A DNA stretch of 64,000 bases from NCBI RefSeq assembly GCF_001194135.2, contig NC_069000.1:17715924-17779923 (forward strand), written 5' to 3'. The notes beneath the pieces were generated by a model, which was not told the DNA's origin, searched no databases, and saw nothing but the letters and a program-made list of their open reading frames with translations. The translations under genes and the position numbers were made by a program. Source of the stretch: Octopus bimaculoides (lineage: Eukaryota). Positions 2,140 through 11,300 of this stretch are shown piece by piece. The stretch's first letter is position 1; each line of letters begins with the position of its first letter.

Positions 2140-2268
2140 CATCGCAGTATGGCGTCGCGGCCAACACACGTGGCTTGATACCTTCTCATTTATTTCTCTC
2201 ATCGTGAAACATTTCATTTGATTTCCCCACTTCATTTCCCGCACATTTTATCCTTCATCAAGTTTGAG
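2140..2268 (+). promoter_or_regulatory. Putative promoter/5' UTR of NSUN2 (possibly shared with MDN1): YY1-like ATGGCG (2149-2154), E-box CACGTG (2167-2172), pyrimidine-rich leader
   Basis: Motifs read directly in a CpG-dense patch in AT-rich DNA just upstream of the first ATG exon. The TSS is not determinable from sequence. Confidence 0.5.
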
Positions 2269-2304
2269 ATGGGCCGCTGCCGTACAAGACGACATTACAA
2301 TAAG
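2269..2304 (+). CDS. NSUN2: NSUN2 coding exon 1 ([12 protein letters not shown]), phase 0
   Basis: ATG at 2269 in a CpG-rich region, with donor AAG|GTAAAT at 2305. The MGR plus Arg-rich start resembles NSUN2 N-termini, and phase 0 joins exon 2 in frame. I found no other ATG exon candidate between 27654 and 32027. Only 12 codons, so less certain than the other exons. Confidence 0.75.
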
Positions 2305-8300: not shown

Positions 8301-11300
8301 CAAAGTTCATCATCACTGCATCAAGGTCCTGGATACATTCCAAGCCAGTGTCTGCGATTGAGTTGTCAATGTGCGATGATGTTTTCCTTTTCTTACATCA
8401 CCATGAAGTGGAGTCCACAAGGCTAATTTGGATGCTTCCAGCTCAGGTGATATACACAGTGACCAGATAGTCACAGCTGTCTGTGCCCGATATTCTTTCT
8501 AGCTTTTGGCAGATCTCCATAAAAAGCATCACTTATCATGTTGCTGTCATATGACAAACGAATGTCTAATCTGTGATGCAATCTGCAGCAGTTTTCTCTA
8601 GCAGTAAACCTGATGAAATCAACATTAGGTTTAGGTTTTGTTGTTTGTGTCAGAGAAAGTACTTGTTGCTCTTTAGTGAGGGAAACCTGTTGCAGTTTGG
8701 TATGGTTGTGGTTGCCACTCACAGGAATGAGCCTTGCAAGTGAAAATGGTTCTGTCGCCCTCACCATTCTTAAGGGTAACATATCATTCTGTCTGCTGAA
8801 ACTATGAAACATTTGCATGTACTATCAACACCATCATTATTTTAATGTTTACTTTTCCGTGCTTGCATGGGTCAGATGGAATTCATTGTGGCAAATTTTC
8901 TATAGCCAGATGCTCTCTGTCACCAACCCTCACTTGTTTCCAAGTTAGCTAATATTTCTTCTTGACTGGACATGATCTTATAGAAAACTAAACAAATAGG
9001 TACTGCCATGACTGAACAGTAAAAAGCTTGCTTTTCAACTACATGGTTCTGGGTTCCCCTTGGGCTGACCAAAGCCTTGTCAGTGGATTTGGTAGACAGA
9101 AACTGAAAGCAACCTGTCGTGTGTGTGTGTGTGTGTGTATGTATATATATATATATATATATATATATATATATATATGTCTCTACCACTACTTGGTAAC
9201 TGGTGTTGGTGTGTTTACATCCCCATTTCAGCAAAAGATACTGATAGAATAAGTTCCAGACTTTAAAAAAAGGGGCGAGGGGAGGATATATTGACTGATG
9301 GGTACTTTGCTGTTATCAGCAGCTAATTTTTTATTTTTCTAAGTATTNNNNNNNNNNNNNNNNNNNNNNNNNNNNNNNNNNNNNNNNNNNNNNNNNNNNN
9401 NNNNNNNNNNNNNNNNNNNNNNNNNNNNNNNNNNNNNNNNNNNNNNNNNNNNNNNNNNNNNNNNNNNNNNNNNNNNNNNNNNNNNNNNNNNNNNNNNNNN
9501 NNNNNNNNNNNNNNNNNNNNNNNNNNNNNNNNNNNNNNNNNNNNNNNNNNNNNNNNNNNNNNNNNNNNNNNNNNNNNNNNNNNNNNNNNNNNNNNNNNNN
9601 NNNNNNNNNNNNNNNNNNNNNNNNNNNNNNNNNNNNNNNNNNNNNNNNNNNNNNNNNNNNNNNNNNNNNNNNNNNNNNNNNNNNNNNNNNNNNNNNNNNN
9701 NNNNNNNNNNNNNNNNNNNNNNNNNNNNNNNNNNNNNNNNNNNNNNNNNNNNNNNNNNNNNNNNNNNNNNNNNNNNNNNNNNNNNNNNNNNNNNNNNNNN
9801 NNNNNNNNNNNNNNNNNNNNNNNNNNNNNNNNNNNNNNNNNNNNNNNNNNNNNNNNNNNNNNNNNNNNNNNNNNNNNNNNNNNNNNNNNNNNNNNNNNNN
9901 NNNNNNNNNNNNNNNNNNNATTTCTCCACTACTGTTCCTTCCTTTGGTTCCTCATACATTTGCTCCTCTTCCTACTGACCATAAATTTATTACAACATTT
10001 AAATACAAAGAAACAGGAGAGAAGAAAGGAGAAAAAAAGTGGTGGTGGGGTAAAGCAGCAGACAAGGGAGGGGGCTACACCTCAGAACATGGTATGTCCA
10101 GCTGTGCCCCTCAGTAATGAATGTGATGGCATTGCTACAGAGAATGACCAGAGACACTGTGGCAGCTACTCCACCTTGCAGGGCTAATTTCTCCAACAGG
10201 CTGCCGTTGCCCTTTTTTGTGGAAGAAATCAGTAGTAGGGGGACCTAGAACACCTGACATCTACTGATATTGGCCAGCCAGGCCCCTGTATTTGAGAGGG
10301 AAATGGTGGTTGAGAGTAATTATAATAAATGCCAGCTAATGTTTTGTACAAGAAGTGTTGCTAGTTTCTGTTAGGTGCATCTGCTAATGCGCAGTGTATA
10401 CGTGGCCCAGCTATATATCGCGAAGTAACAAATATTGTTATAAGAGCCTCTTTCTCTTTCCATTTTGATAGCAACCACTCTTAGTCCCAAGAACCCTTCA
10501 ATATTCTGATTACTCTGTCAAATGTAATGTTTGTTTATATTGTTTTGAATTAATCATGCATTGTCTTGTTTAAAGATTTCTATGATGTGATTGTTTAGTT
10601 TTAGAATGACATCAAATGGTTGAGGTGAGAGGCCAGATCTAGCCTGATACAACATAAAACAGGTTAAATATTTTGGCCTGTTCGAATGCTAAAGGGTTAA
10701 ACCAATCTGTCTGAAATTTTGATTGCATTGATTGTTAATGCAGGGTTTCAGCTGAAAACAGTTCCATCATAGTTTTATGTAAGAACCTTTATATCCCAAA
10801 CACTGTATTATAATATTTTAGTATATCATTCCAAATTCTTGATTAATTTGAAAATTGAGACACATAAGCTGTCTATTCCGAGAAATAGTCACAGAAATAT
10901 TGTTTCTTTTACATCAAGTCTGAATAAGTTTACATTGTGGTTTTTTTATTTCTGTAATTATCTAAGCAGTTTTACTGGGTTATTTATTTCACTGTTTTCT
11001 TTATTAAGAATATAGTATCTTCTTTCATTTATCGTAGACTTAAATTTCTAAAATTTTATAATTTAAAAATAAATTACATTAAAATAATGAACATAATTTT
11101 CATATTTTAATTTAAATTTAGTATTTTTAAAAATAATAAAATAGTTTTATGCACAATCCCTCACAAATACTGTTTATATTGCTACTTACAGAGGCTTTCA
11201 TGCAGTAGTGTTTGGCCTAGACGGTGAAATACTCCAGAAACTAACAAGACTTGCACCACCTGTTGGCTTGAAACATCAACTTCCCCAGGATGGCTAACCC

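Follow-up and report, generated by a model that had tools for sequence, protein, structure and literature searches.

A conserved 3' splice site upstream of an intronless midasin gene nested in the first intron of Octopus NSUN2, and a possible shared first exon

We analysed a 64,000-nt stretch of the Octopus bimaculoides genome (GCF_001194135.2, NC_069000.1, 17,715,924-17,779,923, forward strand; hereafter the window), in which the gene for the giant ATPase midasin (MDN1) lies, as a single exon, within the first intron of NSUN2, a tRNA/rRNA-related methyltransferase gene. The same arrangement is found in a locus whose midasin is only 67% identical, and the sequence directly upstream of midasin that is conserved between the two has the form of a 3' splice site. 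On balance, and from comparison of the sequences, we favour a model in which the midasin mRNA starts in the NSUN2 promoter domain and most likely splices from NSUN2 exon 1 into position 11192; in that model we infer the donor, the balance between the two splices and the mode of translation. Here we set out the evidence for this reading, the points that weigh against it and the alternatives that compete with it.

Results

Midasin is nested in the first intron of NSUN2

The window is AT-rich (about 36% GC) and contains assembly gaps and interspersed repeats. Midasin lies between NSUN2 exons 1 and 2, on the same strand as its host (Table 1). An initial annotation of this DNA had proposed such a same-strand nesting, with NSUN2 exon 1 as a real upstream exon, and the arrangement is indeed present in the window, in Octopus vulgaris and in the more distant locus described below. 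In the O. vulgaris sequence (OX597833.1, our L002) an intact 5453-codon midasin open reading frame (ORF), with its ATG at 23635 and contained within a 5459-codon open frame (23617-39996), lies inside NSUN2.

The identity of the nested gene is clear. Six AAA_5-type modules, an acidic linker and, at the C-terminus, a MIDAS/VWA domain characterize a midasin, a protein of about 5,000 aa. The translation of 11290-27651 equals an NCBI protein residue for residue and clusters with 'midasin-like [Octopus sinensis]'; that O. sinensis orthologue, itself named midasin-like, carries the precomputed Pfam domains AAA_5, AAA_lid and MDN1_4th. Precomputed Pfam matches on the orthologues fit this plan, the C-terminal 364 aa match VWA-bearing midasins, and the acidic stretch shows as a strong G/A skew at 25-26 kb. 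The AATAAA that is the likely midasin poly(A) signal lies within NSUN2 intron 1, and an NSUN2 pre-mRNA has to extend past it. The only octopus-like Logan contig found (SRR16213285_5156, from another species of Octopus), which covers the midasin 3' end only, ends at this signal; it encodes the C-terminal 212 aa with 100% protein and 94% DNA identity, and has an insertion of about 30 nt in the 3' untranslated region (UTR). The contig opens with 652 nt of unrelated low-complexity sequence, probably through chimeric assembly.

The first exon of NSUN2 is equally well placed. Joining 2304 to 32027 in phase 0 reproduces the N-terminus of the O. vulgaris protein CAI9737702.1, in which the exon-1 peptide is followed by GNNRDKW, except for one exon-2 residue (Q for K), and this protein model thereby supports the exon 1 to exon 2 join. 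The exon itself shows one synonymous difference from O. vulgaris. NSUN2 orthologues of animals and fungi have an N-terminus of MG[RK] followed by basic residues, and here just such a peptide is joined in frame to the conserved ...NELF.KYYQ segment. The comparison shows 2269-2304 to be the genuine NSUN2 exon 1. The letters, the splice arithmetic and the last exon base (2304) given for it in the initial annotation were correct, but the ATG has to be moved from 2270 to 2269.

About 100 nt upstream of this ATG are two motifs shared exactly with the distant locus (Table 1). We take AGTATGGCGTC to be a YY1-like core, and CACGTG, which occurs at 2167-2172 inside ACACACGTGGCTTGA, to be an E-box. NSUN2 is a Myc target in mammals, which fits the conserved E-box. 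Ten E-boxes occur in the window where 4.3 are expected, so that the motif is not specific by itself.

A 3' splice site directly upstream of midasin is conserved

An exhaustive representative search identified an ENA contig (ERZ21867824, 474 kb; our L008) that encodes a 5460-aa midasin, 67% identical to that of the window over its full length, in a single uninterrupted ORF (10001-26383). The orthologue of NSUN2 exon 1 in this contig (MGRCRNRRSYRRDNR/GTAATT, phase 0) is 5.6 kb upstream of midasin, and exons 2 and 3 are about 9 kb downstream. In the window as in L008, exon 1 is thus followed by the acceptor and leader, then by the intronless midasin and then by exon 2. Because the layout is the same at 67% midasin identity, the nesting must be old.

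Neutral DNA has diverged beyond alignment at this distance, and upstream of midasin only two non-coding blocks survive. The first covers the NSUN2 promoter and exon 1. The second, 62 nt long, consists of CCTCACAA/CCTGACAA, then TATTGCTACTTACAG/TATTGCTTGTTGCAG, then the 29 invariant bases AGGCTTTCATGCAGTAGTGTTTGGCCT; its variants preserve a branch-point-like motif (CTCAC/CTGAC), a pyrimidine tract and CAG. The alignment sets in about 33 nt ahead of the AG; the AT-rich 260 nt before that point do not align. Because the branch-point-like motif, pyrimidine tract and AG have been kept at 67% midasin identity with so sharp a 5' limit, we conclude from the alignment that the acceptor is real: the block has the features of a true 3' splice site followed by a constrained exon start, and is unlike a proximal promoter.

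The strength of this acceptor was scored with a weight matrix built from 16 NSUN2 acceptors, among which true sites score 1.7-9.9 bits when each is left out in turn. The acceptor at 11192 scores 6.2 bits, in the middle of the range of true sites, and 83 of 2561 other AGs (3.2%) score as well. Its L008 counterpart reaches 12.3 bits, which is in the top 0.6% of AGs there and higher than every real NSUN2 acceptor. The significance of 11190-91 therefore comes from its conservation across species. Two acceptors had been proposed before the midasin ATG (11290), and both AGs are where they were said to be, but 11287-88 scores at chance level (-1.4 bits for a splice into 11289, a value matched by 36% of AGs). 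The second acceptor is therefore not supported, and the conservation of CCAGNATGG before the ATG is explained by its Kozak context, with A at -3.

The leader that would follow the splice is also unusually constrained. Its first 29 nt (11192-11220) are invariant in all three species, with 29 of 29 identical in L008. Between the two Octopus genomes, 11173-11369 is 100% identical, the second-longest perfect run in the window, and reaches from 117 nt ahead of the midasin ATG to 80 nt into the ORF; four-fold degenerate sites of midasin, in comparison, are only 94% identical. Within the invariant segment is a mini upstream ORF (uORF), ATGCAGTAG at 11200-11208, of two codons and a stop (ATG CAG TAG). 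RNA folding of the leader revealed no unusual structure (z = -0.3). We speculate that the invariant 29 nt form a nucleotide-level element, for example a splicing enhancer or a translational control site that includes the mini-uORF. Upstream of 11192, identity with O. vulgaris falls within the range seen upstream of real NSUN2 acceptors, and for this reason the comparison within Octopus could not, by itself, have separated the end of an intron from a promoter.

A single CpG-undepleted domain surrounds NSUN2 exon 1

The initial annotation had named the surroundings of NSUN2 exon 1 as the only promoter-like CpG patch, and this proved to be an understatement. The patch is a domain of about 6 kb in which CpG observed/expected (o/e) stays near 1 (Table 1), and it ends in a sharp drop; across 7-63 kb CpG o/e is 0.03-0.65, with no second domain. 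O. vulgaris (8.5-15.5 kb of L002) and L008 (4-7 kb) likewise have one such domain each. It is presumably unmethylated in the germline. The domain reaches 2.7-4.7 kb beyond exon 1, with CpG peaks at 3.8-4.2, 5.0-5.2 and 5.8-6.1 kb. Upstream of midasin the DNA is, as had been claimed, AT-rich and CpG-poor, with 19.5% GC over 10900-11191 and a CpG o/e of 0.1-0.7. We weighed a CpG/TATA-like patch at 10388-10425 as a candidate internal promoter but reject it: of its four CpGs, two are lost in O. vulgaris, and it has no alignment in L008.

How much weight the CpG landscape can bear depends on octopus methylation. In O. bimaculoides, highly expressed genes carry methylation in their bodies, and about 9,000 transcripts have an unmethylated transcription start site (TSS), while about 5,500 well-expressed transcripts are methylated over both promoter and body (PMC9476566). 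The supplements of the octopus methylome paper have no entry for midasin, MDN1 or NSUN2.

Two assembly gaps interrupt this part of the window, and O. vulgaris bridges both. The gap at 5664-5697 corresponds to L002 13482-13565 (its flanks, 3762-5663 and 5706-6404, align to 11625-13481 and 13566-14248), and the gap at 9348-9919 corresponds to 17910-18416 (flanks 9029-9337 and 9920-10272 align to 17582-17909 and 18417-18756). Both are collinear with O. vulgaris, lie in non-coding DNA of NSUN2 intron 1 and interrupt no reading frame; in O. vulgaris the larger is filled by CpG-poor (4 CpG in 507 nt), unremarkable sequence.

A shared first exon would place an NSUN2-derived uORF before midasin

These observations suggest a model in which midasin has no promoter adjoining its ORF. 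Transcripts initiated in the promoter domain around NSUN2 exon 1 would splice into the 11190-91 acceptor and end at the midasin poly(A) site near 27.8 kb, yielding midasin mRNA; the same primary transcript, when it skips that acceptor and splices 2304 to 32027, would yield NSUN2. NSUN2 exon 1 is the donor that we think most likely; no other upstream candidate exon is conserved between the window and L008. The donor at 2304 is part of every NSUN2 pre-mRNA, which meets the acceptor 21 kb before exon 2, and so the join from 2304 to 11192 is to be expected if that acceptor works. Candidate donors elsewhere are less persuasive. A scan of the intron with a donor position weight matrix found several, none decisive and some within the terminal repeats of transposon-like elements; the donor at 3758, which had been put forward as another partner for 11192, is not conserved. 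In 2305-11289 we found no ORF with convincing coding potential, a 206-aa ORF at 9339-9959 being an artefact of a run of N.

At the letter level, the join of 2304 to 11192 gives exactly the 23-codon uORF predicted for it, ending at a TGA (11225-27) 62 nt before the midasin ATG; the predicted reading of a join to 11289, ...NKDG*, is likewise correct. In L008, where the donor is also in phase 0, the corresponding join opens a uORF of 24 codons that ends 82 nt before the midasin ATG. The NSUN2 start codon, which would open this uORF, has a strong context in both the window (GAGATGG) and L008, so we consider that midasin would be translated mainly by re-initiation rather than by leaky scanning.

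The annotation of O. sinensis provides a further hint. XP_029647301.1 and XP_036366755.1 are an identical 5452-aa midasin from one locus. Given NCBI practice, two accessions for one single-exon coding sequence (CDS) imply transcript variants that differ only in their UTRs, and the pair suggests alternative spliced 5' UTRs.

Several points weigh against this reading. The acceptor at 11192 is not beyond chance when the window is considered alone. The recurrence of a short uORF in two lineages is weakened as an argument by the fact that two of the three splice phases would yield one, and the translation of an essential 16-kb ORF suffers from a strong-context AUG in front of it. Because the sequence of a non-coding first exon is free to drift, such an exon could exist and yet leave no trace in the alignment, and the extension of the CpG domain past exon 1 could hold a second TSS. 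A homologue search with midasin aa 1-306 gave no match, and so no N-terminal fragment from a transcriptome, in an index that appears to contain only proteins of up to about 660 aa. Because so many well-expressed octopus transcripts have methylated promoters (PMC9476566), the CpG argument is only moderate, supportive rather than decisive. Finally, midasin and NSUN2 are annotated in O. sinensis as separate genes.

Alternative origins of the midasin transcript

The strongest competitor, which we rate as a real though clearly less probable explanation, accepts the acceptor at 11192 as real and gives midasin its own non-coding first exon and TSS within NSUN2 intron 1, most plausibly in the CpG-undepleted stretch at 2.3-6.9 kb or else in a gap; the promoter would then be shared with NSUN2 or adjacent to it, and the main midasin mRNA would lack NSUN2 exon 1. 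The CpG-undepleted domain extends well past exon 1 in all three species, conserved donor-like sites exist (for example at 4226, 4346, 5579 and 6653), the strong upstream AUG would be avoided, and retrogenes often gain new 5' untranslated exons (PMC4772013; PMC5803294). However, apart from the NSUN2 promoter and exon 1 the interval has no block conserved between the window and L008, several of the donor-like sites belong to the terminal repeats of miniature inverted-repeat transposable element (MITE)-like sequences, the 3758 donor has not been kept, and NSUN2 pre-mRNA would still offer its donor at 2304 to the same acceptor.

Midasin might instead be an ordinary nested gene, with its own promoter a few hundred bases upstream of 11290, an unspliced leader and NSUN2 reading through; the conserved block would then be a core promoter. 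Its size (-33 to +29 around 11191) would suit one, TATA-like strings are abundant in the stretch of 19.5% GC, the 360 nt before the ATG are 97% identical to O. vulgaris compared with a non-coding median of 92%, and many expressed octopus genes have methylated promoters (PMC9476566). We nevertheless think this unlikely. The L008 alignment stops so close to the AG that it leaves no proximal-promoter sequence aligned, and what it does retain looks like a branch point, a pyrimidine tract, the AG and the start of an exon, with a score in L008 above that of every NSUN2 acceptor. Nor does the Octopus comparison set the DNA upstream of 11192 apart from the approaches to real NSUN2 acceptors; there is no CpG retention, and the two O. 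sinensis variants of one protein suggest a spliced UTR. In addition, a constitutively active internal promoter on the same strand would disturb the host gene (PMC13309782).

That the acceptor receives a trans-spliced leader, in operon-like fashion, is very improbable: an acceptor directly before an ORF with no proven cis donor would fit, but the window contains no gene resembling a spliced-leader RNA, scans of it for Rfam families and tRNAs gave no matches, and to our knowledge spliced-leader trans-splicing has not been described in molluscs.

Origin of the intronless gene

In the bivalves compared, midasin is divided by introns. The gene of the oyster Saccostrea has at least four in its last 250 codons, and in Solemya the first 404 codons are spread across 53 kb. 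No midasin adjoins NSUN2 in Lottia, and no NSUN2 adjoins midasin in Solemya. With bivalve orthologues multi-exonic and those of Octopus and L008 intronless, cephalopod midasin appears to be a full-length processed copy inserted into NSUN2 intron 1, a view drawn entirely from the absence of introns; cDNA-mediated intron loss may be an alternative origin. No A-run follows the AATAAA and no poly(A) remnant was found, and flanking direct repeats were not looked for systematically. Decay of such marks of retroposition is to be expected, because the event predates the split represented by 67% identity. In both sampled cephalopod lineages the copy appears to be the working one.

Intron turnover, gene models and neighbouring features

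The content of the intron upstream of midasin has been free to change. O. vulgaris has an extra 3.9 kb there (L002 18757-22635), about 1 kb upstream of the midasin ATG, containing reverse-transcriptase-like ORFs (a long interspersed nuclear element fragment) and absent from the window at 10272/10293; it is this insertion that shows the freedom. Three MITE-like elements with terminal inverted repeats, at 4316-4701 (60 nt, 83%), 5580-6025 (22 nt, 100%) and 6067-6416 (105 nt, 71%), sit in the CpG-undepleted part of intron 1, and some carry donor-like GTAAAT strings. One short interspersed repeat has copies at 10492-10709, 29183-29394, 38187-38364 and 47345-47556; the first of these, in the 1 kb before midasin, has also been conserved in O. 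vulgaris. NSUN2 exon 2 is flanked by an inverted pair of GC-richer repeats (31000-31420 and 33000-33440), the second split by a gap of 10 N (33353-33362).

The NSUN2 exons of the window are nearest to those of O. sinensis and O. vulgaris, with few residue differences. Gaps at 49800-50702 and 51200-51495 conceal the exons for about aa 548-622, and the long 'ORFs' at 49282-50858 are artefacts of runs of N. Existing models of this locus conflict. In O. vulgaris the annotated NSUN2 (L002 10001-87848) spans 77.8 kb, begins with the exon-1 peptide and runs across the midasin ORF, and the gene list has no midasin. In O. sinensis the 580-aa NSUN2 model XP_029647246.2 starts downstream of midasin, in a coding exon whose counterpart in the window we call exon 1b, and stops where the window carries a gap. 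We reject exon 1b as the true start of NSUN2, and it is probably no real coding exon: the encoded peptide shows no conservation (LAS/FGS/FGC) and the window lacks its first ATG. We take the downstream start for a probable artefact of annotation, brought about by the nesting of midasin.

Beyond NSUN2, an ankyrin-repeat gene lies on the minus strand within 57000-64000 (ORF 61438-62103); the neighbouring gene in O. vulgaris has Ank domains. CpG o/e rises to 0.78 at 63-64 kb, perhaps at the promoter of this gene.

Table 1. Coordinates of features of the NSUN2/midasin locus in the window (position 1 is its first base)
Feature	Position	Strand	Description and basis
Single CpG-undepleted domain around NSUN2 exon 1	900-6900 (approximate, ~6 kb)		CpG o/e ~0.8-1.2
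Conserved NSUN2 promoter motifs	2146-2178	+	AGTATGGCGTC and ACACACGTGGCTTGA; exact 11-15-mers shared with L008 (4206-4238)
NSUN2 exon 1, coding part	2269-2304	+	36 nt, ATGGGCCGCTGCCGTACAAGACGACATTACAATAAG then gtaaat; phase-0 donor AAG/GTAAAT at 2305
NSUN2 intron 1	2305-32026	+	29.7 kb; spliced model against the O. vulgaris protein; holds gaps, MITE-like elements and midasin
3' splice-site region	11158-11191	+	Branch-point-like CTCAC (A at 11163), pyrimidine tract TATTGCTACTTAC, AG at 11190-91
Midasin 5' leader, proposed midasin exon start	11192-11289	+	Conservation with O. vulgaris and L008
Midasin (MDN1) CDS	11290-27654	+	5454 codons and TGA, one exon, 16.4 kb; ORF list
AATAAA, likely midasin poly(A) signal	27802-27807	+	148 nt past the stop
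'Exon 1b' (rejected as NSUN2 start)	30386-30409	+	Counterpart of the first coding exon of O. sinensis NSUN2 model XP_029647246.2 (L001 10001-10039)
NSUN2 exons 2 to last	32027-56966 (end approximate)	+	tblastn and spliced model
NSUN2 exon 2	32027-32107	+	tblastn and spliced model
NSUN2 exon 3	34440-34534	+	tblastn and spliced model

Discussion

Even without the junction, an intronless nested midasin in at least two cephalopod lineages informs the evolution of cephalopod genomes. If the model that we favour is true, an essential housekeeping gene of 5454 aa has survived very long without a promoter of its own, carried along in the intron of another gene, and the output of a 60S-assembly ATPase and of a methyltransferase is tied to one E-box promoter and one splice decision. 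A broader proposal, which we hold only tentatively, would extend this to cephalopods: one promoter and one coding first exon would serve two essential, unrelated genes; a retro-derived midasin of about 17 kb would have replaced its multi-exonic ancestor and be expressed only as an alternative terminal exon of NSUN2; the NSUN2 start codon would act as a regulatory uORF; and the 29-nt element would balance tRNA methylation against 60S assembly, all of it kept since before the split at 67% identity. In that case midasin would possibly be the largest known functional intronless gene of retro origin.

The pair is best regarded as an unusually large and old member of known designs, the cholinergic locus on the one hand and retrocopies that use 5' exons of their host on the other, with the twist that the shared exon would code for part of the host protein. 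Like the nested gene of the cholinergic locus (ChAT/VAChT; cha-1/unc-17), midasin has its whole ORF in one exon, in the first intron of its host and on the same strand, and comparative evidence points to a 3' splice site directly upstream of the nested ORF here too. In the tick cholinergic locus, a shared first exon and alternative choice of 3' splice site produce two unrelated proteins, as confirmed by reverse-transcription PCR (PMC7524744). There are differences, however. The shared exon of the cholinergic locus is non-coding, whereas the candidate here holds the NSUN2 start codon and would create a uORF; the junctions there are experimental and here they are inferred; and a neuron-specific pair is replaced by housekeeping nucleolar and translation factors and a nested ORF of 16.4 kb. 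If the junction is confirmed, this would be a second clear animal case of the cholinergic-locus design, and one outside neurotransmission.

Of retrocopies expressed as chimeras with 5' exons of their host, 13 are reported in human and 14 in mouse (PMC4772013), and the way in which retrogenes 'hitchhike' on host promoters has been reviewed (PMC5408686). As in such cases, for example mouse Taf9 in Ak6, midasin looks like an intronless copy of a multi-exonic gene, lying in sense orientation in an early intron of the host; unlike them, it is about 17 kb long, far above the typical size, and neither a poly(A) tract nor, short of a systematic search for flanking repeats, a target-site duplication was seen. 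Amphioxus SYCP1 offers another possible parallel: there a gene with a single coding exon has replaced a multi-exonic ancestor, gained 5' untranslated exons and co-opted a neighbour's promoter (PMC5803294), although that promoter is the bidirectional one of an adjacent gene and midasin lies inside its neighbour's intron on the same strand. Finally, in the comparable host and nested pair H13/Mcts2, elongation of the host transcript faces competition from the poly(A) region of the nested gene (PMC13309782); Mcts2, however, has a CpG-island promoter of its own, which causes intronic polyadenylation of the host, whereas no island is seen at midasin.

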